A stretch of 64,000 nt of DNA, from the IMG/VR virus record IMGVR_UViG_3300034104_005687, positions 248,001 to 312,000 of that record. One strand, 5' to 3'. The translations under genes and the position numbers were made by a program. The notes beneath the pieces were generated by a model. That model was not told the origin of the DNA. It was given only the letters and a program-made list of their open reading frames with translations, and made no database searches. Of this stretch, positions 54,983 to 64,000 are shown piece by piece (positions within the stretch are counted from its first letter, which is position 1; every line of letters begins with the position of its first letter).

Positions 54983-57649
54983 ATGAGTTATATTGACGCA
55001 CTATTTGATCGTGAGCACGATCGCATTCATGTTGTAGAACGCCGCGATGGCATTCGCAAATATCAAGAGTACCCTGCAAATTACGTTTTTTACTACGACG
55101 ATGCTCGTGGCAAATTTCGCAGTATCTACGGCAATCCAGTTTCAAGATTCAGTTCCAAAAACAACAAAGAATTTCGCAAAGAAGTGCGACAGCACAGCCA
55201 CAAGCAGTTGTATGAAAGCGATATCAACCCAATCTTTCGTTGTCTAGAAGACAACTACAAGGGTCAAGATGGTCCCAAGCTACAAACAGCATTTTTTGAC
55301 ATTGAAGTAGCATTTGACAAAGAGCGTGGGTTTTCACCTACCACAGATCCTTTCAATCCTATCACAGCAATATCAGTGTACCTGGACTGGCTGGATCAAC
55401 TGATTACTATGGCAGTGCCGCCGCGAGGGTTGAGTTGGGAAACTGCACAGGAACTGGTAGCAGAGTTTGACAACACATTTTTGTTTGAACGTGAAGAAGA
55501 CATGATCAAGATGTTTCTTGACATCATCGATGATGCTGATGTGTTGAGTGGTTGGAACTCCGAGGGCTATGATATACCTTACACAGTAAACCGTACCACA
55601 CGGGTGCTCAGCAAGGATGACACTCGCAAGTTTTGCTTGTGGGGACAGTTGCCCAAAAAACGCATGTTTGAACGTTTTGGTGCAGAGAACGAAACATACG
55701 ACTTGATTGGTCGAGTGCATATGGACTATATGCAACTGTATCGCAAGTACACTTACGAAGAACGTCACAGTTATAGCCTAGATGCCATTGCTGAATACGA
55801 ACTAGGCGAACGCAAGACACAGTTCGAAGGCACACTGGATCAGTTGTATAATCAACACTTCAAGAAGTTTATTGAATACAACCGTCAGGACACTGCACTG
55901 ATCGGCAGACTGGACAAGAAGCTGAAGTTCTTGGATCTGGCCAACGTGTTGGCACATGAAAACACTGTGCTGTTGCAGACCACCATGGGTGCTGTGGCAG
56001 TGACTGAGCAAGCTATTATTATCGAAGCCCACGAACGTGGAGTTGTTGTTCCTAACCGCAAAGAAAGACTCGCAGATGAAGACACACAAGCCGCAGGTGC
56101 CTATGTTGCTTACCCCAAAAAAGGCATCCATGAATACATTGGCAGTATTGACATCAACTCGCTCTATCCCTCGGCTATTCGTGCGCTCAACATGGGGCCA
56201 GAAACCATTGTTGGTCAACTCAGACCCACGGCAACTGATAAATTGATTCGTGACAACATGTCTCAAGGGCAAAGCTTTGCTGCTGCCTGGGAAGGCTTGT
56301 TTGCCAGCATAGAGTATACTGCTGTGATGGAACAGAATCGCGGCAGCGAAATCACCATTGACTGGCAAGATGGCACAGAAAGCACACACTCAGGTGCTGA
56401 AATTTGGCACATGATTTTTGATTCTAACCAGCCCTGGATCATGAGCGCCAATGGCACTATTTTCACTTATGAACGTGAAGCAGTGATTCCAGGCCTGCTG
56501 AAACGTTGGTATGCTGAACGCAAACAAATGCAGGCCAAACTCAAAGAGTGCATTGACTCAGGAGACAAAGCTGCCGAAGAGTATTGGGACAAGCGTCAAT
56601 TGGTCAAGAAGATTAACTTGAACAGCTTGTATGGTGCTATTTTGAATCCAGGATGTAGATTCTTTGACAAACGTATTGGACAGAGTACCACACTCACAGG
56701 CCGTAGTATTGCTAAACACATGGATGCGTATGTCAACGAATGTATCACAGGCAAATATGATCATGTGGGCGAGACCATCATCTATGGCGACACAGATTCG
56801 TGTTATTTCTCGGCCTGGCCAGTGTTGCAGAAGTCTGTGGAAGCTGGCGAAATGGAATGGAACAAAGAAATTTGCATTCAGCTGTATGATTCAATTGCTG
56901 ATCAAGTCAACGAAAGCTTTCCTGGATTTATGGAGCAAGCATTTCATTGTCCCAGGGAAATGGGTTCAGTGATCAAGGGCGGTCGAGAAGTTGTGGCATC
57001 AAAAGGACTGTTTATTACCAAAAAGCGATATGCTGTGATGATTGTGGACAAAGAAGGCAAACGTCAAGACATCAATGGCAAGCCGGGCAAGGTCAAAGCC
57101 ATGGGGCTGGATCTAAAACGCAGCGATACTCCCAAAGTGATTCAAGACTTCTTGAGTGATGTATTGCACGATGTGCTAACAGATGCCACACGCGATGCTG
57201 TGGTTGAAAAAATACGCACATTCAAATATGTGTTTTCAGAACGTCCAGCCTGGGAAAAAGGTTCACCCAAGCGTGTCAACAATTTGACCAAGTATGGTGC
57301 TGCCGAGGCTGCGCAAGGCAAAGCCAATATGCCAGGACATGTGCGAGCAGCACTGAACTGGAACACACTGCGTCGCATGAACAGCGACAACTATTCAATG
57401 CAGATTGTGGATGGCATGAAAACCATTGTGTGCAAGTTAAAGTCGAATGCATTGGGCTGGACATCAATTGGTTATCCCACTGACGAGCAGAGACTGCCCG
57501 CCTGGTTCACAGAATTGCCTTTTGATGACGGGCTCATGGAAGCCACTGTGGTTGACGGCAAAGTTGACAACTTGTTGGGTGTGTTGGACTGGGACTTGGC
57601 AGCAGCCACCAACACTGAAAACACATTTACCTCACTGTTTAGCTTCTAA
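54983..57649 (+). CDS. Family B DNA polymerase
   Basis: ExoI 'FFDIEV', ExoII 'GWNSEGYDIPY', ExoIII 'YNRQD'; polymerase motifs 'DINSLYPS', 'KINLNSLYG', 'YGDTDS', 'KKRY'. Confidence 0.97.
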   Translation: MSYIDALFDREHDRIHVVERRDGIRKYQEYPANYVFYYDDARGKFRSIYGNPVSRFSSKNNKEFRKEVRQHSHKQLYESDINPIFRCLEDNYKGQDGPKLQTAFFDIEVAFDKERGFSPTTDPFNPITAISVYLDWLDQLITMAVPPRGLSWETAQELVAEFDNTFLFEREEDMIKMFLDIIDDADVLSGWNSEGYDIPYTVNRTTRVLSKDDTRKFCLWGQLPKKRMFERFGAENETYDLIGRVHMDYMQLYRKYTYEERHSYSLDAIAEYELGERKTQFEGTLDQLYNQHFKKFIEYNRQDTALIGRLDKKLKFLDLANVLAHENTVLLQTTMGAVAVTEQAIIIEAHERGVVVPNRKERLADEDTQAAGAYVAYPKKGIHEYIGSIDINSLYPSAIRALNMGPETIVGQLRPTATDKLIRDNMSQGQSFAAAWEGLFASIEYTAVMEQNRGSEITIDWQDGTESTHSGAEIWHMIFDSNQPWIMSANGTIFTYEREAVIPGLLKRWYAERKQMQAKLKECIDSGDKAAEEYWDKRQLVKKINLNSLYGAILNPGCRFFDKRIGQSTTLTGRSIAKHMDAYVNECITGKYDHVGETIIYGDTDSCYFSAWPVLQKSVEAGEMEWNKEICIQLYDSIADQVNESFPGFMEQAFHCPREMGSVIKGGREVVASKGLFITKKRYAVMIVDKEGKRQDINGKPGKVKAMGLDLKRSDTPKVIQDFLSDVLHDVLTDATRDAVVEKIRTFKYVFSERPAWEKGSPKRVNNLTKYGAAEAAQGKANMPGHVRAALNWNTLRRMNSDNYSMQIVDGMKTIVCKLKSNALGWTSIGYPTDEQRLPAWFTELPFDDGLMEATVVDGKVDNLLGVLDWDLAAATNTENTFTSLFSF

Positions 57650-58590
57650 TGAAACTGAGTGATTTGGTTGCCTATAGAAACTTGTTGGAAGAATATTCCC
57701 TGGCGGATATTCACCAACAGTCTCGCGGTCAGCTCAATGCTGTGATGCATCAAGTGGTCAACCATGGACTACAATTCAAACAGTTCAGCAGGGAACTGGG
57801 GCAGGATGCTGCCGCAATTGATTCAGCATTTGTCAAATTTGGTACCACTATCAACGACATCAAACAACACCTAGATGTGTTGATTGAGCAACAATATCCC
57901 GACATGCTTAGAGAAAGCCTGCGTTGGTTTGAACACGAAAGCATATACGAGGCCACTGACTATGTGCTGAATCGCAAACTGCATCTTGATCCAGCTAGTC
58001 AGGAATTGTTGTTGGGTCGAGTATTGAGATACACTGATTGGCGATTGCCTGGGTTGTGTTTTAGACCTGGATTAGAAAAATGGGTAGAACACTTGGTACC
58101 CTTGGATCCGTTGTATCTGGTAGACCACAACACTGAGTTATTGGCACCAGCAGTGGCAGGGTTTCACGAGCAGTATCAGCGCAGACTGAGATTGTATACC
58201 ATTAATGATTGCAACAACAATCAGGCTATTTTATCACAACTACCCAACAATCAATTTGGTTATGTGTTTGCCTACAACTGGTTCAATTTCAAACCATTGC
58301 AGGTAATCGAGCAGTACCTACGTGAACTGTGGCACAAGGTACGACCTGGCGGTACAGTGTTGATGACATTCAATGACTGCGATTATGCACATGGTGTTGC
58401 ACTAGCCGAACGCAATTTTATGTGCTTTACCCCGGGCACACGCATCATGAAGGCTGCCGAAACAGTGGGGTTTGACACCCTGGATCGACATCGCGGGCTA
58501 GGTGATGTAGCCTGGTTAGAATTCCAAAAGCCCGGAAAAATTTACAGCCTGCGCGGCGGCCAAACATTGGCCAAAATAATTGAGAAATAA
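57649..58590 (+). CDS. Methyltransferase-fold protein
   Basis: C-terminal 'LRELWHKVRPGGTVLMTF'; SAM motif I is degenerate; N-terminal coiled coil. Confidence 0.55.
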   Translation: MKLSDLVAYRNLLEEYSLADIHQQSRGQLNAVMHQVVNHGLQFKQFSRELGQDAAAIDSAFVKFGTTINDIKQHLDVLIEQQYPDMLRESLRWFEHESIYEATDYVLNRKLHLDPASQELLLGRVLRYTDWRLPGLCFRPGLEKWVEHLVPLDPLYLVDHNTELLAPAVAGFHEQYQRRLRLYTINDCNNNQAILSQLPNNQFGYVFAYNWFNFKPLQVIEQYLRELWHKVRPGGTVLMTFNDCDYAHGVALAERNFMCFTPGTRIMKAAETVGFDTLDRHRGLGDVAWLEFQKPGKIYSLRGGQTLAKIIEK

Positions 58591-58601
58591 TATCAATTTA
58601 G

Positions 58602-58630
58602 TTGAAAAATCTAAATATATCCTGTATAAT
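58602..58630 (+). promoter_or_regulatory. Sigma70-type promoter with a nested late-type motif
   Basis: TTGAAA-17 nt-TATAAT, with CTAAATA (58611-58617) inside the spacer. Confidence 0.65.
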
Positions 58631-58647
58631 TGTTTAAAGGAGAAATC

Positions 58648-59370
58648 ATGAGAGACCATTTGTTAGACCTAGTACAACACAGCATTGACCTTGGCTGTAT
58701 CGACATGTTGAAAATTGAGGGCACTGAGACCGAGACCAAAATCATTGGTGTAGGCAATGATCAAAGTGTGGTGATTGATGGTGTATTCCATCATCCAATT
58801 GCTGAGTTTGTGGGATCGTTTGGCATGCCTAATCTGCCCAAACTCAAAACTATTTTGAATCTTGATGAGTACAAACAAGATGCCAACTTGACCATGAGCC
58901 GCAACAACAGCGGTGATCTTGACGGCATTGAATTTGCCAACAAGTCTGGAGACTTTCGCAACACCTATCGATTCATGGTAGCAAATGTTGTGGCCAGCAA
59001 AGTGCCCACACCTAAGTTCCGTGGAGCCAACTGGCACGTTGAATTCCAGCCAGCCGCTGCCAACATTCAACGCCTGAAATGGCAAATGAGTGCCAATGCT
59101 GAAGAACCCAACTTTCAAACCAAAGTTGAAAACGGCGATTTGAAGTTCAGCTTTGGTGCAGCGGCCACACACGCTGGCAACTTTGTGTTTCAATCAGCAG
59201 TGACAGGAACACTCAAACGCAGTTGGAATTATCCTGCCGCACAGATTGCCAGCATTTTAGGCAGCAGTGGCGACAAAACCATGAAACTCAGTGACGATGG
59301 TGCTATGCAGATCACTGTGGATTCAGGACTGGCTGTTTACAACTACATCATCCCTGCTCAGACCAAGTAA
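58648..59370 (+). CDS. Probable DNA sliding clamp (gp45/PCNA-like)
   Basis: 240 aa, alpha/beta pattern ending 'YNYIIPA'; next to PolB, and the clamp loader is in the window; AAGGAG RBS. Confidence 0.6.
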   Translation: MRDHLLDLVQHSIDLGCIDMLKIEGTETETKIIGVGNDQSVVIDGVFHHPIAEFVGSFGMPNLPKLKTILNLDEYKQDANLTMSRNNSGDLDGIEFANKSGDFRNTYRFMVANVVASKVPTPKFRGANWHVEFQPAAANIQRLKWQMSANAEEPNFQTKVENGDLKFSFGAAATHAGNFVFQSAVTGTLKRSWNYPAAQIASILGSSGDKTMKLSDDGAMQITVDSGLAVYNYIIPAQTK

Positions 59371-61004
59371 TGACTGATTCTATTGTTCAAGACAATCTCA
59401 CAGCCAAGCAGTCAGACTATGCTGTGTTTTTACCAGCTATCTCAGGCTTCTATGCTACCTTTGTAGGAAAACAAAGGAACGAGCACTATGTGGATCCTGC
59501 ACGTTTCCCTGCTGGGCTCACAGACATGGAACAGATGAATTGGCTCAACAGCCAAAAAGCCTTGTTTCCGTATCGTTGGAGTCTGTATTCTGGTGGGCAT
59601 GCCAACTTGGACTTGAACAAGCAGGACTGGTCAGAGGACATGGTTCGCAACCGAGAGCCCGGCACGTTCATCCTAGGCGACTCAGGTGGATTTCAAATTG
59701 CCAAAGGCCTGTGGGAAGGCGATTGGAAAGCCAACTCGGGTTGTCCAAAAGCACAAAAGAAACGTGAGTTGATTCTAAACTGGCTAGACACAGTGGCTGA
59801 CTACGGAATGATTCTTGATATTCCAACTTGGGTCATTCACGACAAGAAAGCATCAGAAGCCTGTCAGATTACCACATTGCAAGAAGCCGTGGATGCCACC
59901 AAGTTCAACAACGAATACTTCATGCGTCACCGCAAGGGTGTAAAGAATGGTGGTGCCAAGTTCTTGAACGTGTTGCAGGGAGACAACCACACCAGTGCGG
60001 ATGCATGGTACGAGACCATGAAGGAATATTGTGATCCTGCAAAATATCCAGACACACATTTTGATGGGTGGTCAATGGGTGGTCAGAACATGTGCGATGT
60101 TCATTTGGTGTTGCGACGACTGGTGGCTTTGCGATACGACAACTTGCTGCAACAGGGAGTACATGACTGGATGCACTTCTTGGGCACATCAAAACTAGAG
60201 TGGGCGGTGTTGCTCACTGTTATTCAGAGAGCTGTGAGAAAATATGTCAACCCTGCTTTTACTATCTCTTTTGATTGTGCTAGTCCATTCCTTGCAACGG
60301 CGAACGGGCAAGTCTATTTTGAAAACGTTTTTGAGCACGATTCTAAGTGGTCGTACAGAATGGCGCCGTCGGCAGACGACAAAAAGTACTCAACAGACAC
60401 CCGCAAGTGGTCAGACGGAGTAGTACAAGACGGTGTCTATCCACGTTGGGAAGACTCACCAATCAGCAACATGCTGAAGATGAAAGACATCTGTATCTAC
60501 AAGCCAGGTGTGCCCAAAGCAGGTGTTGTTATCACAGAAGAAAACTTCCGTGATCCAGAAATGTATGATGTATTGCCTGATGTCAACAAGAACAGCAAGT
60601 GGGGTAAGACATCCTGGGACAGTTTCAGTTATGCCTTGCTGATGGGTCACAACGTTTGGATGCATTTGACTGCGGTGCAAGAAGCCAACCGACGCTTTGA
60701 TGCTGGTGAACATCCTGCTATGATGCAACGTTCGGGAGGTGATTACGCCAAGTTTGCGGACATTGTAGAAGCTATCTTTGCAGCACCAGACCGTGACAGT
60801 GCAGAAGCCATAATTGAACACTATGACACATACTGGATGGAGATTGTGGGCACACGCGGATTCAAAGGCAAAAAGACCAAAAACGCACGTACACAGTTCA
60901 ACGCATTGTTCAGTTTGGACGAACCCGAGGTTGCACAATCCAATGACGACAGTGTACAATTAGACAACAACAAACTCGATCAACTAGAGCAGGATCAACA
61001 ATGA
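59370..61004 (+). CDS. tRNA-guanine transglycosylase (TGT)/DpdA-like protein
   Basis: 'DSGGFQ', 'MILDIP', 'VLQG', 'GWSMGG', 'HFLG', 'SFDCAS', 'HN'. Confidence 0.8.
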   Translation: MTDSIVQDNLTAKQSDYAVFLPAISGFYATFVGKQRNEHYVDPARFPAGLTDMEQMNWLNSQKALFPYRWSLYSGGHANLDLNKQDWSEDMVRNREPGTFILGDSGGFQIAKGLWEGDWKANSGCPKAQKKRELILNWLDTVADYGMILDIPTWVIHDKKASEACQITTLQEAVDATKFNNEYFMRHRKGVKNGGAKFLNVLQGDNHTSADAWYETMKEYCDPAKYPDTHFDGWSMGGQNMCDVHLVLRRLVALRYDNLLQQGVHDWMHFLGTSKLEWAVLLTVIQRAVRKYVNPAFTISFDCASPFLATANGQVYFENVFEHDSKWSYRMAPSADDKKYSTDTRKWSDGVVQDGVYPRWEDSPISNMLKMKDICIYKPGVPKAGVVITEENFRDPEMYDVLPDVNKNSKWGKTSWDSFSYALLMGHNVWMHLTAVQEANRRFDAGEHPAMMQRSGGDYAKFADIVEAIFAAPDRDSAEAIIEHYDTYWMEIVGTRGFKGKKTKNARTQFNALFSLDEPEVAQSNDDSVQLDNNKLDQLEQDQQ

Positions 61005-61498
61005 ATCGCAAAGGACACGACCATGTGAATTTTTTCACTGGTACAGAAGTAGAAAAAACTCCTGCATTTGGCAAACAAACACTGTTTGTGGTAGGTGTGC
61101 AAAGTGTCGAAAGTGTTGCACTGAATTTACAAGGCTGCGAACATATCTTTTTTGGAGCCAATCACAGCTTTGATCCCAAAGACAATCTAGAGTGGGCACG
61201 TTGGGAAGGCATGATCGGATACTTTCTTGAGCGTGGTTATTTGTGCAGTTTGGATATTCCCACAAGTGCTGTAGAGCAATTCAATGACTCGGGCTTGTGC
61301 GAATATCGCAACTTTGTGCCACAGATTCGTGTGAGCATTCCGTATATTAAATTGTGGAACTACAACACCATGATCAAGATTGACGACAACGATTTTGACG
61401 CAACCAATCCCGGCGTATGGACGCACAGCTTGCACAGCCTAATGTCAAAGCGAACGTTCACAGACTGGGATCAATACAACAAGGACCAACCTATATGA
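61001..61498 (+). CDS. Hypothetical protein (165 aa)
   Basis: Coupled ORF in the TGT operon. Confidence 0.7.
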   Translation: MNRKGHDHVNFFTGTEVEKTPAFGKQTLFVVGVQSVESVALNLQGCEHIFFGANHSFDPKDNLEWARWEGMIGYFLERGYLCSLDIPTSAVEQFNDSGLCEYRNFVPQIRVSIPYIKLWNYNTMIKIDDNDFDATNPGVWTHSLHSLMSKRTFTDWDQYNKDQPI

Positions 61499-61938
61499 AT
61501 CAACAACAAAGAGAAACAGTAGAACGCATTATGACTGCGGCAGAGCGTAAAATTTGGATCACGTTTCGCAAGGAAGGCATTCACTGCTATCCTGCAGCCG
61601 CAACTGATCCTGCACTGGCCACAGGCGACGAGTATGATGTGAGCTTTCTTGGCACACCACACCGTCACATCTTTCACTTTCGTGTTTGGATCGACGTGAT
61701 TCACAATGATCGAGACATTGAGTTCATCCAGTTCAAACGCTGGTTAGAGAATCTTTACAGAGACAGTATTCTACAGTTGGATTACAAGAGCTGTGAAATG
61801 ATGGCAGATGATCTATATCTACAGATTGCTGCAAAGTATCCAGATCGTGCGGTCTGGATTGAGGTTGCCGAAGATGGTGAAAACGGCGCCCTTATAAAGT
61901 ACGAAACTTACCGCCCTCAACTCAGTGTTAACATTTAA
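61495..61938 (+). CDS. QueD/6-pyruvoyl-tetrahydropterin synthase-like T-fold protein
   Basis: 'GIH', 'HRH', 'SCEMMA' and 'EVAEDGENGA' align with the QueD pattern H...HGH...T.E.lA...ET. Confidence 0.6.
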   Translation: MNQQQRETVERIMTAAERKIWITFRKEGIHCYPAAATDPALATGDEYDVSFLGTPHRHIFHFRVWIDVIHNDRDIEFIQFKRWLENLYRDSILQLDYKSCEMMADDLYLQIAAKYPDRAVWIEVAEDGENGALIKYETYRPQLSVNI

Positions 61939-61947
61939 GGAAGTATC

Positions 61948-62175
61948 ATGGCCAAGCCTACATTCAAACCCAACCAGCGCCTGACTGAGATCTTTGAAGA
62001 TCTCGAAGTGTTCTTGGAATTCTGCCAAGACTACGGGTATCGTTACAACGAGAGCGATCTCTACAACTTCAAAAGCTATGCTTGGCAACAGTTTACCAAG
62101 TACAGCACCGGCAAGAACGCCAAGAACATGTGGTGGGAAGATGCACGCCGCTTTGCAGGATACCGCCCAGCATGA
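61948..62175 (+). CDS. Hypothetical protein (75 aa)
   Basis: AAGGA RBS; coupled to the next gene. Confidence 0.65.
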   Translation: MAKPTFKPNQRLTEIFEDLEVFLEFCQDYGYRYNESDLYNFKSYAWQQFTKYSTGKNAKNMWWEDARRFAGYRPA

Positions 62176-63386
62176 GAAAGCTGTTCTACATGGGCTTGGA
62201 GAGCTACGAAGCCCGTTACACACTACAGCTCACAGAGTGGAACCGGCGTGTTTTTGAACGCCGTGGCTTAGACGTTGTGTATGTACCCGGCAACACCATT
62301 GACAACACACAGGCCATCTCAGTGGGTCAAGTGTTGGATGCACATGGTCGCAGTTACTTTGCCATGAGCCAGATGATGAATTTGGTTCAGATGATGAAGA
62401 ACGGTGATGTCACAGGTGACGATGTGATCTACTTTGAAGACATGTTCCAGCCAGGCTTTGAAAGTCTTGGCTATATCATGAATCAGATTCCACGTGAACA
62501 ATGTCCCAAAATCTATGTGCGTTGTTTGGCACAGGCCATTGACCCTGATGACTTTGTGCATGTATGGGGTATGGCAAAGTGGATGAACTTGTATGAACAA
62601 ATGGTCAATGAAATGGTGGCTTTCTCGGGGGGTGCAGTATTGGCTACCAATGAGGAAATGGTCGCGCACATGCGCATTGCTGGATGGACTGCTCCAATCT
62701 ACAACATTTCTGGTCTTGCATTTGGAAAGGCGGAAGTACTGGAGCGGATCGGTGGACTGGAAAAAATCCAACCGTTTAATCAGCGTTCCCGGAGGGTGGG
62801 TTTCGCAGCAAGGTTTGACCAAGAAAAGCAACCTGGCTTCTTTATGGATCTCATTGAAATGTATGGCGAGCTTACCACGGAGCCATGTGAGTTTGCAATT
62901 TACAGTGGCGGACCTTTGCGATCCAACAATCCAGAGTATGTTGAACGTGCCCGCCGTATGGAGGCAGAAGGCAAACTCCAGATCTATGACAACATAAGCA
63001 AGAACGAATACTATGCTCACCTTAACAATACTCGTGTGCTGTTTAATTGTGCTCTACAAGACTGGGTCTCTAACACAGTTTCCGAGGCTGACACTCTTGG
63101 CTGCAATGTTCTTTATCCTGCCTATCGCAGTTTCCCCGAAACTTTTGCAAACGATCCAAACAGGCTTTATGTCCCTTGGAGTATAGACGATGCCTACCAC
63201 AAAATGCAACTACTCTTACGAGAACCGCATCACAACATGGGACTTATTAGCGATTGGAACAATGCCACTGTGGATCGTGTTGTTGATATCGTTACTGGCA
63301 TGGGTGAGCAGTGGAATCGAGCGGGCAATCGCTATCGTGACCATGCTGCTCACGAAAAATATCAAGTTGTAAAGATTGAATCATGA
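62172..63386 (+). CDS. GT-B fold (GT4-like) glycosyltransferase
   Basis: 'FAARFDQEKQP', 'QDWVSNTVSEADTLGC', 'SFPE'. Confidence 0.75.
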   Translation: MRKLFYMGLESYEARYTLQLTEWNRRVFERRGLDVVYVPGNTIDNTQAISVGQVLDAHGRSYFAMSQMMNLVQMMKNGDVTGDDVIYFEDMFQPGFESLGYIMNQIPREQCPKIYVRCLAQAIDPDDFVHVWGMAKWMNLYEQMVNEMVAFSGGAVLATNEEMVAHMRIAGWTAPIYNISGLAFGKAEVLERIGGLEKIQPFNQRSRRVGFAARFDQEKQPGFFMDLIEMYGELTTEPCEFAIYSGGPLRSNNPEYVERARRMEAEGKLQIYDNISKNEYYAHLNNTRVLFNCALQDWVSNTVSEADTLGCNVLYPAYRSFPETFANDPNRLYVPWSIDDAYHKMQLLLREPHHNMGLISDWNNATVDRVVDIVTGMGEQWNRAGNRYRDHAAHEKYQVVKIES

Positions 63387-64000
63387 ATGTTGTAGTAACA
63401 GGCGCTGCTGGCTATATTGGCGGCCAAGTGGCATTGCAGTTGCAAGATGCAGGCCACTCTGTAACAGGCATTGACCGCAGACCTTTGCCACAACACCTTC
63501 GAGGTATAATGAAGTTTGTGCAAGCAGACTTTGACAGCGACGAGTCCTATAAATTGTTGTTGGATGTGCAGCCCAATGCTATTGTACATTGTGCCGGTAC
63601 TAGCCTGGTTGGGCCCAGCATTAAAAAACCTTCAGATTACTACAACAACAATGTGGCCAAGACCCTGCACCTGCTTAATTTTATAACACAGGCTTTGCCT
63701 CGAACTAGATTTATTTTTAGTTCAAGCGCAGCAGTATACGGTGAACCTATTATGACACCATGTCACGAAGTTGATCCTTTGCAACCTATCAGTCCCTACG
63801 GTCAAAGCAAATTGATGACAGAAATGATCTTGGAGAGCTATCATTGTGCTTATGGGCTGGACTATGTGGCATTCCGCTACTTCAATGCCTGCGGTGCCGA
63901 CAGCCAAGCTAGGCATGGACAAGAGACAGGTGCCACGCACATCATTGCCAGGGTGCTGGAAAGCATTAGAGATCAACAAGATTTTGTGCTCAACGGCATT
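63383..64000 (+). CDS. galE: UDP-glucose 4-epimerase-like NAD-dependent epimerase (runs off the window end; not in the ORF track)
   Basis: 'VVTGAAGYIGG', 'FSSSAAVYG', YxxxK 'PYGQSK', 'RYFNACGA'. Confidence 0.88.
   Translation, partial: MNVVVTGAAGYIGGQVALQLQDAGHSVTGIDRRPLPQHLRGIMKFVQADFDSDESYKLLLDVQPNAIVHCAGTSLVGPSIKKPSDYYNNNVAKTLHLLNFITQALPRTRFIFSSSAAVYGEPIMTPCHEVDPLQPISPYGQSKLMTEMILESYHCAYGLDYVAFRYFNACGADSQARHGQETGATHIIARVLESIRDQQDFVLNGI

Follow-up and report, generated by a model that had tools for sequence, protein, structure and literature searches.

Does a lake-water giant phage that carries a gene row resembling a base-modification operon immediately after its DNA polymerase and sliding clamp replace guanine in its own DNA with a 7-deazaguanine, and does it decorate this base with a sugar? 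To address this, we analyzed a window of 64,000 nucleotides (positions 248,001 to 312,000 of the IMG/VR record IMGVR_UViG_3300034104_005687) together with the rest of the 349-kb genome. The original prediction, made from the sequence alone, was that a TGT/DpdA-like gene, a QueD-like gene, a glycosyltransferase gene and galE form an operon beside PolB and the clamp, and that this operon may direct a sugar-decorated 7-deazaguanine modification, with a tRNA target as the alternative. We confirmed the presence of every element named and found the interpretation supported, with several refinements. On computational evidence alone, insertion of a 7-deazaguanine derived from 7-carboxy-7-deazaguanine (CDG) into DNA is probable, whereas the subsequent glycosylation of that base is about as likely as not. 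Such a sugar-bearing DNA modification was not described in the papers searched.

Gene organization of the locus

The genes that start the replication and modification row, and those that follow up to the end of the window, are as follows:

54983..57649 (+), family B DNA polymerase
57649..58590 (+), 313-aa protein of unknown function, a conserved upstream neighbor
58630..59370 (+), sliding clamp (gp45/PCNA-like)
59370..61004 (+), 544-aa TGT-fold protein, a long-form DpdA-like guanine transglycosylase and the proposed DNA base-exchange enzyme
61001..61498 (+), 165-aa conserved protein of unknown function
61495..61938 (+), DpdL, a QueD/PTPS paralogue and proposed CDG decarboxylase
61948..62175 (+), 75-aa conserved ORF of unknown function
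62172..63386 (+), GT4-type GT-B glycosyltransferase, the proposed sugar-adding enzyme of the deazaguanine system
63383..64000 (+), UDP-glucose 4-epimerase GalE, cut by the window end

Successive genes overlap by 1 or 4 bases (ATGA type), and the description of the row as tightly coupled is therefore correct. The polymerase was identified with Pfam DNA_pol_B (2.7e-36), DNA_pol_B_exo1 (1.6e-17) and phrog_262 (1.2e-191), and its nearest isolate relatives are those of the jumbo phages Phosso, Atu_ph07, Vibrio 2.275.O and the 121Q group. The 313-aa protein gave no family hit but is present in 66 of 76 related loci with enough flank. The 246-aa clamp matched phrog_12062 and, in a structure search of the Atlas, PCNA and gp45 sliding-clamp clusters (TM 0.72-0.76); it is homologous to PA5oct EST35_0314 and is present in 77 of 77 loci. 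The 165-aa protein is translationally coupled to the DpdA-like gene, with ATGA overlaps on both sides, and is present in 60 of 61 related loci. Its only homologue among the isolate-phage clusters examined is ACP17 gp122, which is next to the DpdA of that phage, and no Pfam or PDB match was found.

Two gene starts were corrected. The likely starts are ATG 61495 for DpdL (147 aa) and ATG 62172 for the glycosyltransferase (404 aa), and the 75-aa ORF lies between them. An AAGGAAG ribosome-binding site precedes ATG 61948, the stop of this ORF overlaps the glycosyltransferase start, and the ORF is present in 50 of 50 related loci with enough flank. The full galE gene encodes 314 aa and ends 327 bases past the window; the fragment matched Pfam Epimerase (1.3e-43), and the full-length protein scored 292.3 bits on TIGR01179 galE against a cut-off of 262.3. 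GalE is present in 26 of 35 related loci and is thus a lineage-specific accessory rather than part of the conserved core.

The same-strand operon continues beyond the window with a mini DegT-like protein, a 338-aa ORF, FolE, a HIT protein, QueD, a second GT-like protein, a B12 radical-SAM enzyme, a 233-aa ORF, QueE, a 140-aa ORF, a nucleotidyltransferase, a DUF6071 protein and a 5'-3' exonuclease. The genes folE, queD and queE, of which the original prediction noted only that folE and queE were not in the window, lie about 2-8 kb downstream, interleaved with sugar genes, while queC is absent from the whole genome.

Characteristics of the TGT-fold protein

The similarity of the 544-aa protein to TGT could not be seen with Pfam, PHROGs or phmmer, and the protein matched no curated TGT or DpdA model at threshold. 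It is, however, clear by structure: the AF2 model (pLDDT 89.9) gave Foldseek top hits in PDB that are all TGT (E about 3e-7), and VIA-align gave Z about 18 over about 300 residues to bacterial, archaeal and human TGT. The protein has DSGGFQ at 104-109, SFDC at 300-303, six scattered cysteines and no CxCxxC. In an alignment of 79 family sequences, S74, D104, S105, G107, H269 and D302 are invariant and no Cys is. The family comprises 945 clusters at 50% identity.

The nearest characterized relatives of this protein act on DNA. Profile-profile alignment with hhalign gave 96.6% (E 5.5e-10) to DpdA2 of Vibrio phage VH7D, which put preQ0 and preQ1 into plasmid DNA in E. coli, and 95-97% to the DpdA2-type proteins of ACP17 (gp123, 96.8%), X1 and BUCT-ZZ01. 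Structural hits in BFVD include nt-1 DpdA2 and the Motura TGT. The protein belongs to a large unnamed clade allied to DpdA2, as a long-form relative and not as a member of any named DpdA subfamily.

DpdL and the predicted route to 7-deazaguanine

The gene described as QueD-like in the original prediction is more precisely dpdL, and a true queD lies downstream. The product carries the LGTPHRHIF motif, which fits the LxxxHRHxF signature of Cui et al. 2023 (PMC10516641), and is 34% identical to phiST CGPG_00067 and 55% identical to ACP17 gp125, both named DpdL in that paper. It also matched phrog_17812 (8e-35) and is present in 55 of 55 loci. The gene set matches what Cui et al. 2023 describe for DpdL phages, namely DpdA, FolE, QueD, QueE and DpdL without QueC, a set that in Cellulophaga phage phiST goes with complete replacement of G by 2'-deoxy-7-deazaguanosine (dDG). 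Since queC is absent, the base is inferred to derive from CDG, probably as 7-deazaguanine made through DpdL, and not from preQ0. The decarboxylase activity of DpdL has never been shown, and co-expression of the dpdA and dpdL genes of phiST and of ACP17 in E. coli gave no dDG.

Association of the glycosyltransferase with deazaguanine genes

The glycosyltransferase was identified by its predicted fold: the AF2 model (pLDDT 78) gave Foldseek E about 1e-10 and VIA-align Z about 24 to retaining GT4 enzymes, with MshA, BshA, PimA, TarM, SenB and BGluT among the matches. Comparative analysis strengthened its link with the deazaguanine genes and provided the new result of this study. Homologues lie beside DpdL and deazaguanine-synthesis genes in seven separate phage lineages (this one, PA5oct, ACP17, X1/BUDD, BUCT-ZZ01, Phosso and BCSR5), five of them with a DpdA-type gene in the same cluster, and also in 41 of 41 related metagenomic loci with enough flank. 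On the other hand, six of 13 DpdL lineages, including phiST with plain dDG, have no glycosyltransferase homologue within 9 kb, indicating that glycosylation is optional and that the glycosyltransferase could serve another purpose. In addition, a more distant homologue in PhiXhv-12-type phages sits with GlmS and a deacetylase, and no gene within 9 kb of it is annotated as a deazaguanine gene. No ThyA-family hydroxymethylase, TET/JBP or C5 methyltransferase was found in the genome, so the known pyrimidine acceptors for DNA glycosylation are missing.

Proposed pathway

Taken together, we regard the locus as the 5' half of a roughly 17-kb replication-linked operon that may make a hypermodified guanine in the phage's own DNA, a reading that, as a whole, we hold with moderate confidence. 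Strong family matches suggest that FolE, QueD and QueE convert GTP to CDG and that no preQ0 is made by the phage. DpdL would then convert CDG to 7-deazaguanine, as proposed, but not verified, for phiST. From its fold, catalytic residues, relatives and context, we infer that the TGT-fold protein, which lacks the zinc subdomain of TGT, exchanges guanine in double-stranded phage DNA for this base after replication, using the conserved aspartates D104 and D302. The cluster sits between PolB plus clamp and a 5'-3' exonuclease, and homologous clusters in PA5oct, ACP17, X1, Phosso and phiST lie beside polymerase or other replication genes too. The last step is inferred from gene association only: the GT4-type glycosyltransferase would transfer a sugar from a nucleotide sugar onto the deazaguanine, most likely once it is in DNA. 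7-Deazaguanine has no obvious hydroxyl to glycosylate, and the attachment point is thus unexplained, although there is a precedent for a glycosyltransferase acting on a 7-deazaguanine scaffold in HuiG of huimycin synthesis. In this lineage, GalE would supply UDP-Gal or UDP-Glc, and the sugar may be elaborated further by the downstream GT-like proteins, the mini DegT-like protein, the RfaE-II-like nucleotidyltransferase and the B12 radical-SAM methyltransferase-like enzyme. The purpose would be protection from restriction and other DNA-targeting defenses. No nucleoside chemistry supports these assignments, and the public runs are short-read contigs that carry no modification signal.

Alternative interpretations

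The alternative that remains possible, although we favor it less, is that the DNA carries plain 7-deazaguanine or another CDG derivative and that the glycosyltransferase, GalE and the other sugar genes are only co-transcribed and act on virion proteins, host envelope glycans or another DNA base. The unglycosylated dDG of phiST-type DpdL systems, the DpdL lineages without a nearby glycosyltransferase, the accessory nature of GalE, the PhiXhv-12-type homologue and the lack of an evident acceptor group are consistent with this view. However, the recurrence of the glycosyltransferase beside DpdL in seven lineages with otherwise different genomes, and in 41 of 41 related loci, is hard to explain by co-transcription alone; moreover, the sugar genes are interleaved with folE, queD and queE, and no other known DNA acceptor pathway is present in the genome. 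A tRNA target is unlikely but not excluded. The genome encodes 24 tRNAs, including Asp-GUC, Tyr-GUA, Asn-GUU and His-GUG, at position 34 of which a deazaguanine could be placed and then glycosylated; the fold is that of tRNA-guanine transglycosylase, and a language-model feature search placed the glycosyltransferase near clusters named tRNA-queuosine alpha-mannosyltransferase, at ranks 34 and 47 among generic GT4 clusters. Nevertheless, the zinc motif of TGT, and with it the corresponding subdomain, is missing, Pfam QTMAN_N does not match the glycosyltransferase, and no preQ1 or queuosine route is evident, as no QueC was found and no QueF, QueA or QueG is among the operon genes scanned. The DNA-acting DpdA2 relatives, the location among replisome genes in every lineage checked, the replacement of G in DNA by the related phiST system and the restriction resistance of PA5oct DNA also argue against it.

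Two further possibilities appear more doubtful still. In one, the deazaguanine is converted to a (deoxy)nucleotide and incorporated by the phage PolB, with the TGT-like protein in a salvage or editing role and the HIT protein, the RfaE-II-like nucleotidyltransferase and a MazG/PRA-PH-like pyrophosphatase, which lie in or just after the operon, shaping the nucleotide pool. BUCT-ZZ01 has a xanthine-guanine phosphoribosyltransferase inside its cluster, and phiST, which replaces all of its G, has a MazG-like gene next to DpdL. In contrast, no phosphoribosyltransferase (PF00156) was found in this genome, a DpdA-type enzyme with intact catalytic aspartates is conserved in every related locus, and Cui et al. 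2023 conclude that insertion is post-replicative in all known cases. In the other, which we consider the least likely, the operon makes a soluble glycosylated pterin or deazapurine comparable to tetrahydrobiopterin glucoside or huimycin, given that FolE plus a PTPS-family enzyme plus a GT4 glycosyltransferase is also the logic of pterin glycoside synthesis, that the tetrahydrobiopterin glucosyltransferase BGluT is among the structural matches (Z about 22), and that HuiG glycosylates a free deazapurine. Yet BGluT is no closer structurally than many other GT4 enzymes, a conserved transglycosylase with intact catalytic residues has no role in such a pathway, the operon lies among replisome genes, and a genome-mining study treats dpdA in a cluster as the marker of nucleic acid modification rather than secondary metabolism.

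Comparison with known systems

The DpdA2 transglycosylases of Schizotequatrovirus-type vibriophages (VH7D, nt-1) and the DpdA2-type proteins of ACP17, X1 and BUCT-ZZ01 share with the 544-aa protein the TGT-type TIM barrel, the aligned DSGG(F/L)Q, LD/FDE-IP, QG, H-x-LG and S-(F/Y)-D motifs, including both catalytic aspartates, and a location next to folE in a phage replication and nucleotide-metabolism region. The present protein has no CxCxxC motif. The relationship is not detectable by BLAST at 1e-5 in either direction, and the present protein is about 100 residues longer, with a roughly 95-residue N-terminal region before DSGGFQ and large insertions after the barrel. VH7D and nt-1 pair DpdA2 with QueC or QueF and insert preQ0 or preQ1, whereas here queC is absent and DpdL is present. 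The DpdA3 plus DpdL system of phiST follows the same pathway logic, with FolE, QueD, QueE, a homologous DpdL sharing the LxxxHRHxF motif and a divergent DpdA, without QueC and next to the polymerase. However, its DpdA3 has 259 aa and is only marginally related to the present protein (hhalign 85% over 83 columns), no glycosyltransferase, GalE or other sugar genes lie near the cluster, and its measured product is unglycosylated dDG.

The closest isolate counterpart is the cluster EST35_0314-0322 of the Pseudomonas jumbo phage PA5oct (Wroclawvirus), which has the order clamp, long-form DpdA-like protein (36% identity), GT4-like protein, DpdL (58% identity) and QueE, downstream of PolB. A deazaguanine system was predicted there by Iyer et al. 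2021, and PA5oct DNA resists restriction, consistent with a modified G, although this modification has not been identified chemically either. PA5oct lacks GalE, the mini DegT-like protein, the B12 radical-SAM enzyme and the 165-aa protein within the region examined, and its glycosyltransferase is the short, roughly 350-aa form, only 23% identical. T4-type glucosylation of 5-hydroxymethylcytosine, and phage glycosyltransferases that put glycans on 5hmC, embody the same idea, in which a GT-B enzyme uses a UDP-sugar to decorate an already modified base in phage DNA and extra glycosyltransferases extend the sugar, but here the acceptor would be a purine analogue and not a hydroxymethyl pyrimidine. 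T4 AGT and BGT were not among the 50 best structural matches of the present glycosyltransferase, the best being cellular GT4 enzymes. In huimycin and dapiramicin tailoring, a glycosyltransferase uses a UDP-sugar to glycosylate a 7-deazapurine derived from the FolE/QueD/QueE pathway, and glycosyltransferases of the huimycin clusters carry Pfam PF13439; those are actinomycete small-molecule pathways that start from preQ0 and lack any DpdA or TGT.

Genome context and gene organization

The virus record that contains the region (bases 248001-312000) is 349,369 bp long and was judged 97% complete. Its PolB is most similar to those of the jumbo phages Phosso, Atu_ph07, Vibrio 2.275.O, SCTP-2 and the 121Q group (41-50% identity), whereas a megablast search of the region against isolate phages found no match. 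Nineteen lake-water metagenome runs hold most of the stretch, and in two of them contig pieces without differences cover much of it. The record therefore represents a real, recurrent freshwater jumbo phage, although these runs are short-read contigs and carry no modification signal, and the one run labelled RNA is probably DNA and holds only relatives.

From 54983 to the window end, all genes are on the + strand, and successive genes overlap by 1 or 4 bases.

Genes from 54983 to the window end (window coordinates)
54983-57649 (+): PolB
57649-58590 (+): 313-aa protein of unknown function, no family hit
58630-59370 (+): sliding clamp, TM 0.72-0.76 to PCNA and gp45 models
59370-61004 (+): 544-aa protein with a predicted TGT fold
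61001-61498 (+): 165-aa protein of unknown function
61495-61938 (+): DpdL
61948-62175 (+): 75-aa ORF, conserved in relatives
62172-63386 (+): GT4-like glycosyltransferase with a predicted GT-B fold
63383 onward (+): GalE

The GalE assignment rests on the full-length 314-aa protein, which scored 292.3 bits against the TIGR01179 equivalog cut-off of 262.3. The 165-aa protein had no Pfam or PDB match, even with a 31-sequence profile, and an Atlas feature search suggested a Helicase_C-like protein only at a score (about 0.9) too weak to use.

On the same strand, the gene row continues beyond the window; where given, coordinates are those of L006, a stretch that extends past the window end.

Genes downstream of the window
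L006:7302-7904 (+), just past the window end: 200-aa DegT/DnrJ/EryC1-like protein
L006:7901-8917 (+), 900-1917 bases past the window end: 338-aa ORF
FolE
HIT protein
true QueD
280-aa protein matching a PHROG glycosyltransferase family
L006:11633-13630 (+): 665-aa B12-binding radical-SAM protein
L006:13627-14328 (+): 233-aa ORF
QueE (phrog_2076, 1.5e-52)
140-aa ORF
RfaE-II-like nucleotidyltransferase
L006:16063-16833 (+): DUF6071 protein
5'-3' exonuclease

The DegT-like protein is about half the usual length but keeps an SFGYTK lysine motif, and its function as a half-size aminotransferase is unclear. We considered that it might be a fragment broken by the following 338-aa ORF. However, relatives without that ORF have the same roughly 200-aa gene directly before folE. 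The 338-aa ORF occurs at quite different positions in relatives, or not at all, like a mobile or shuffled gene. The radical-SAM protein, which was seen in 9 related loci, is nearest to KedN5-type C-methyltransferases but below the cut-off (269 bits against 700), and could methylate the base or a sugar. The 233-aa ORF is a paralogue of the DUF6071 protein (jackhmmer 5e-34).

The 544-aa protein is a long-form relative of DpdA2

Curated models did not recognize the 544-aa protein: searches with Pfam, PHROGs and phmmer against PDB found nothing, and Pfam PF01702 gave no hit even at E 10, with only 4 of 79 family members hitting weakly (best E 0.0087). A family profile against PDB gave only E about 0.5 to Z. 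mobilis TGT. Membership in the TGT/DpdA superfamily therefore rests on fold and motifs. The AF2 model (pLDDT 89.9) matched TGT for all of the top 50 Foldseek hits in PDB (E 3e-7 to 2e-6), and VIA-align gave Z 17.6-18.7 over about 300 residues to bacterial TGT, ArcTGT and QTRT1. The original prediction had noted catalytic DSGGFQ and SFD motifs and the lack of a CxCxxC zinc motif, and this was exact: DSGGFQ lies at 104-109, SFDC lies at 300-303, and there is no CxCxxC. In 79 diverse members, S74, D104, S105, G107, H269 and D302 are invariant and no cysteine is conserved. D104 and D302 align with the same motifs in DpdA2 proteins, and DSGGFQ aligns with Z. mobilis TGT.

Among viral models, the protein matched the Motura 'tRNA guanine transglycosylase', nt-1 R9TGF0 and, weakly, the phiST DpdA3 (Foldseek E 5.6e-3). 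Profile comparison by hhalign gave 96.6% to VH7D DpdA2, 96.8% to ACP17 gp123, 95.9% to the X1 enzyme and 94.9% to the BUCT-ZZ01 enzyme, while the relation to phiST DpdA3 (CGPG_00065) was marginal (85% over 83 columns). By tblastn, the protein found only PA5oct-like phages, Phosso and Vibrio 2.275.O. ACP17 gp123, in contrast, is BLAST-similar to the DpdA2 proteins of nt-1, VH7D, phi-Grn1 and phi-ST2 but did not find the PA5oct group. The relation to DpdA2 is seen only profile to profile. VH7D DpdA2 put preQ0 and preQ1 into plasmid DNA in E. coli (PMC10516641). We conclude that the protein is a zinc-free, long-form DpdA relative allied to DpdA2 that appears to lie outside every named subfamily, although bDpdA, DpdA1 and DpdA4 reference sequences were not included in the comparison. 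The family is very abundant, with 945 clusters at 50% identity in an exhaustive search and more than 7000 metagenomic proteins matched in a word-indexed search.

DpdL and the deazaguanine synthesis genes

The gene originally predicted to be QueD-like is DpdL. It carries LGTPHRHIF, which fits the LxxxHRHxF signature that Cui et al. 2023 (PMC10516641) give for DpdL, their proposed CDG decarboxylase, in place of QueD's CxxxHGH. It is homologous to the two DpdL proteins they name, phiST CGPG_00067 (BLASTP 7e-17) and ACP17 gp125 (1e-46). An hhalign comparison of a six-sequence DpdL alignment with the phage's own QueD found nothing, and a PDB profile search gave only a weak match to chain 2dj6 (E 0.71); the assignment rests on homology to the published proteins and on the motif. 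The context also fits, namely a cluster with DpdA, FolE, QueD and QueE but no QueC. The only weak QueC match in the genome is an NAD synthase (NadE, Pfam 1.3e-48; genome about 238294-239160, L003:1375-2241 in a second stretch of the record). In phiST, this combination goes with complete replacement of G by 2'-deoxy-7-deazaguanosine. In Vibrio phage Bakedbeans (L174:8266-9417 of its retrieved stretch) and Chryseobacterium phage MA9V-3 (L178:8395-9276), the DpdL-like region is the C-terminal part of much longer annotated proteins (383 and 293 aa, respectively), which may be fusions or mis-called starts.

Glycosyltransferase and its association with deazaguanine genes

From ATG 62172, the glycosyltransferase has 404 aa. 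Pfam Glycos_transf_1 detected it only weakly (E 0.02, 14.8 bits against a cut-off of 26.4), and homologues in ACP17, PA5oct and BUCT-ZZ01 were also below threshold. Its model (pLDDT 78) has a two-Rossmann-domain GT-B fold, with Z 21-24.7 over 300-343 residues to SPS, MshA, BshA, TarM, SenB, PimA and others, and Foldseek E about 1e-10, close to retaining GT4 enzymes. Five residues (R214, E218, K219, E305 and E323) are invariant in 32 homologues. Within the gene, at window 62315-62960, the summed contig depth in lake metagenomes is two to five times that of neighbouring genes and many variant contigs are found. Several co-occurring phage strains or lineages may therefore share this part of the gene; the homologue in the lake cyanophage BUCT-ZZ01 is 64% identical.

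BLAST and HMM searches placed homologues of this protein inside deazaguanine clusters of other phages. Six cultured relatives carry DpdL with the glycosyltransferase, four of them with a DpdA gene alongside.

Position of the glycosyltransferase homologue in other phages
PA5oct: EST35_0317, between the DpdA-like gene and DpdL
ACP17: gp124, between DpdA and DpdL
X1 and BUDD: directly before the TGT (X1 examined)
BUCT-ZZ01: directly after DpdL
Phosso: directly after DpdL
BCSR5: between DpdL and QueE

In Sinorhizobium phage Phosso (L172, 8409-10484 of its retrieved stretch), the long-form DpdA homologue (record 323228-324706) lies about 170 kb from the cluster of PolB, clamp, DpdL, glycosyltransferase, FolE and QueE, and a 177-aa gene annotated 'glycosylase' occupies the position that DpdA holds in the other clusters.

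We also examined 80 IMG/VR loci whose DpdA-like protein is 55-100% identical to this one.

Loci with the gene / loci with enough flank
165-aa protein: 60/61
DpdL: 55/55
75-aa ORF: 50/50
glycosyltransferase: 41/41
FolE: 24/25
DegT-like protein: 28/32
GalE: 26/35

These loci belong to one clade and are not independent. Moreover, six DpdL lineages (the phiST group, RHph_I1_18, Bakedbeans, Ahp1, D479 and MA9V-3) have no glycosyltransferase homologue within 9 kb. Nor does the family occur only with deazaguanine genes: a more distant homologue in PhiXhv-12-type phages of about 227 kb (Xanthomonas phage PhiXhv-12, L179:6735-9969 of its retrieved stretch) sits with GlmS and a BshB-like deacetylase, with no annotated deazaguanine gene nearby, and may belong to a different sugar-based system. 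The conserved core is the clamp, the DpdA-like protein, the 165-aa protein, DpdL, the 75-aa ORF and the glycosyltransferase, whereas GalE and the other sugar genes are accessories of this lineage.

Discussion

The original prediction, that a TGT/DpdA-like enzyme and an associated glycosyltransferase and epimerase may produce a sugar-decorated 7-deazaguanine in DNA, was supported with refinements. The base is inferred to derive from CDG and is probably 7-deazaguanine made through DpdL, the proposed transglycosylase represents a new long-form DpdA clade, and the glycosyltransferase, not GalE, is the conserved partner. The step from gene association to a glycosylated base in DNA is an inference for which we consider the evidence nearly balanced, with the attachment atom of the sugar unexplained.

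Other targets were considered. The known pyrimidine acceptors for DNA glycosylation are absent, since no ThyA-family hydroxymethylase (PF00303), TET/JBP (PF12851) or C5 methyltransferase (PF00145) was matched in the 349-kb genome at E 1. A nucleotide-pool route is weakened by the absence of a PF00156 phosphoribosyltransferase, although a MazG/PRA-PH-like pyrophosphohydrolase just after the 5'-3' exonuclease (L006:18013-18636), together with a MazG-like gene next to DpdL in phiST, hints at nucleotide-pool control alongside the modification. A tRNA target cannot be dismissed for lack of substrate, because a block near the right end of the record (genome 332941-349337) encodes a tmRNA (tag ANDSQFALAA) and 24 tRNAs, including all four GUN-anticodon tRNAs (Asp-GUC, Tyr-GUA, Asn-GUU and His-GUG). 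Against it stand the missing zinc motif, the missing preQ1 supply genes (no QueC in the genome, and no QueF among the operon genes scanned against Pfam), the DNA-acting relatives, the replisome context in every lineage checked, and the restriction-resistant DNA of PA5oct (PMC12191111).

It is possible, though tentative, that a widespread group of phages decorates a 7-deazaguanine in its DNA with a sugar, using a dedicated GT4-type enzyme that travels with DpdL and, in most lineages, DpdA. The group would include abundant freshwater jumbo phages, Pseudomonas PA5oct, Acidovorax ACP17, Xanthomonas X1, Synechococcus BUCT-ZZ01, Sinorhizobium Phosso and Burkholderia BCSR5, and in the present lineage the sugar may be a methylated or amino-modified oligosaccharide. 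Iyer et al. 2021 noted a deazaguanine synthesis and incorporation system in PA5oct, and a 2026 review still calls deazaguanine use by jumbo phages 'predicted'; in the papers searched, we found no report of glycosylated deazaguanine in phage DNA or of DpdA together with a glycosyltransferase. Such a modification could explain the unidentified modified G of PA5oct. It could also explain why Cui et al. could not obtain dDG from the dpdA and dpdL genes of ACP17 in E. coli; the phiST genes likewise gave none, and they suggested that other enzymes may be needed. The glycosyltransferase and the 165-aa-type protein next to ACP17's DpdA are candidates for those enzymes. Given the abundance of the family, the modification would be ecologically common, and it would matter for phage therapy candidates; PA5oct-type phages are restricted by END nucleases that sense modified G. 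It would also add new enzymes for labelling DNA, namely a long-form, zinc-free DNA transglycosylase and a glycosyltransferase that may recognize a purine analogue.

A glycosyltransferase acting on a deazapurine scaffold has a precedent in HuiG of huimycin synthesis. Known 7-deazaguanine DNA modifications carry small groups at C7 (H, carboxy, amido, cyano, aminomethyl and its methyl or formyl derivatives, and formamidino). A sugar on this base would join two anti-restriction strategies that have so far been seen separately, deazapurine replacement and DNA glycosylation.
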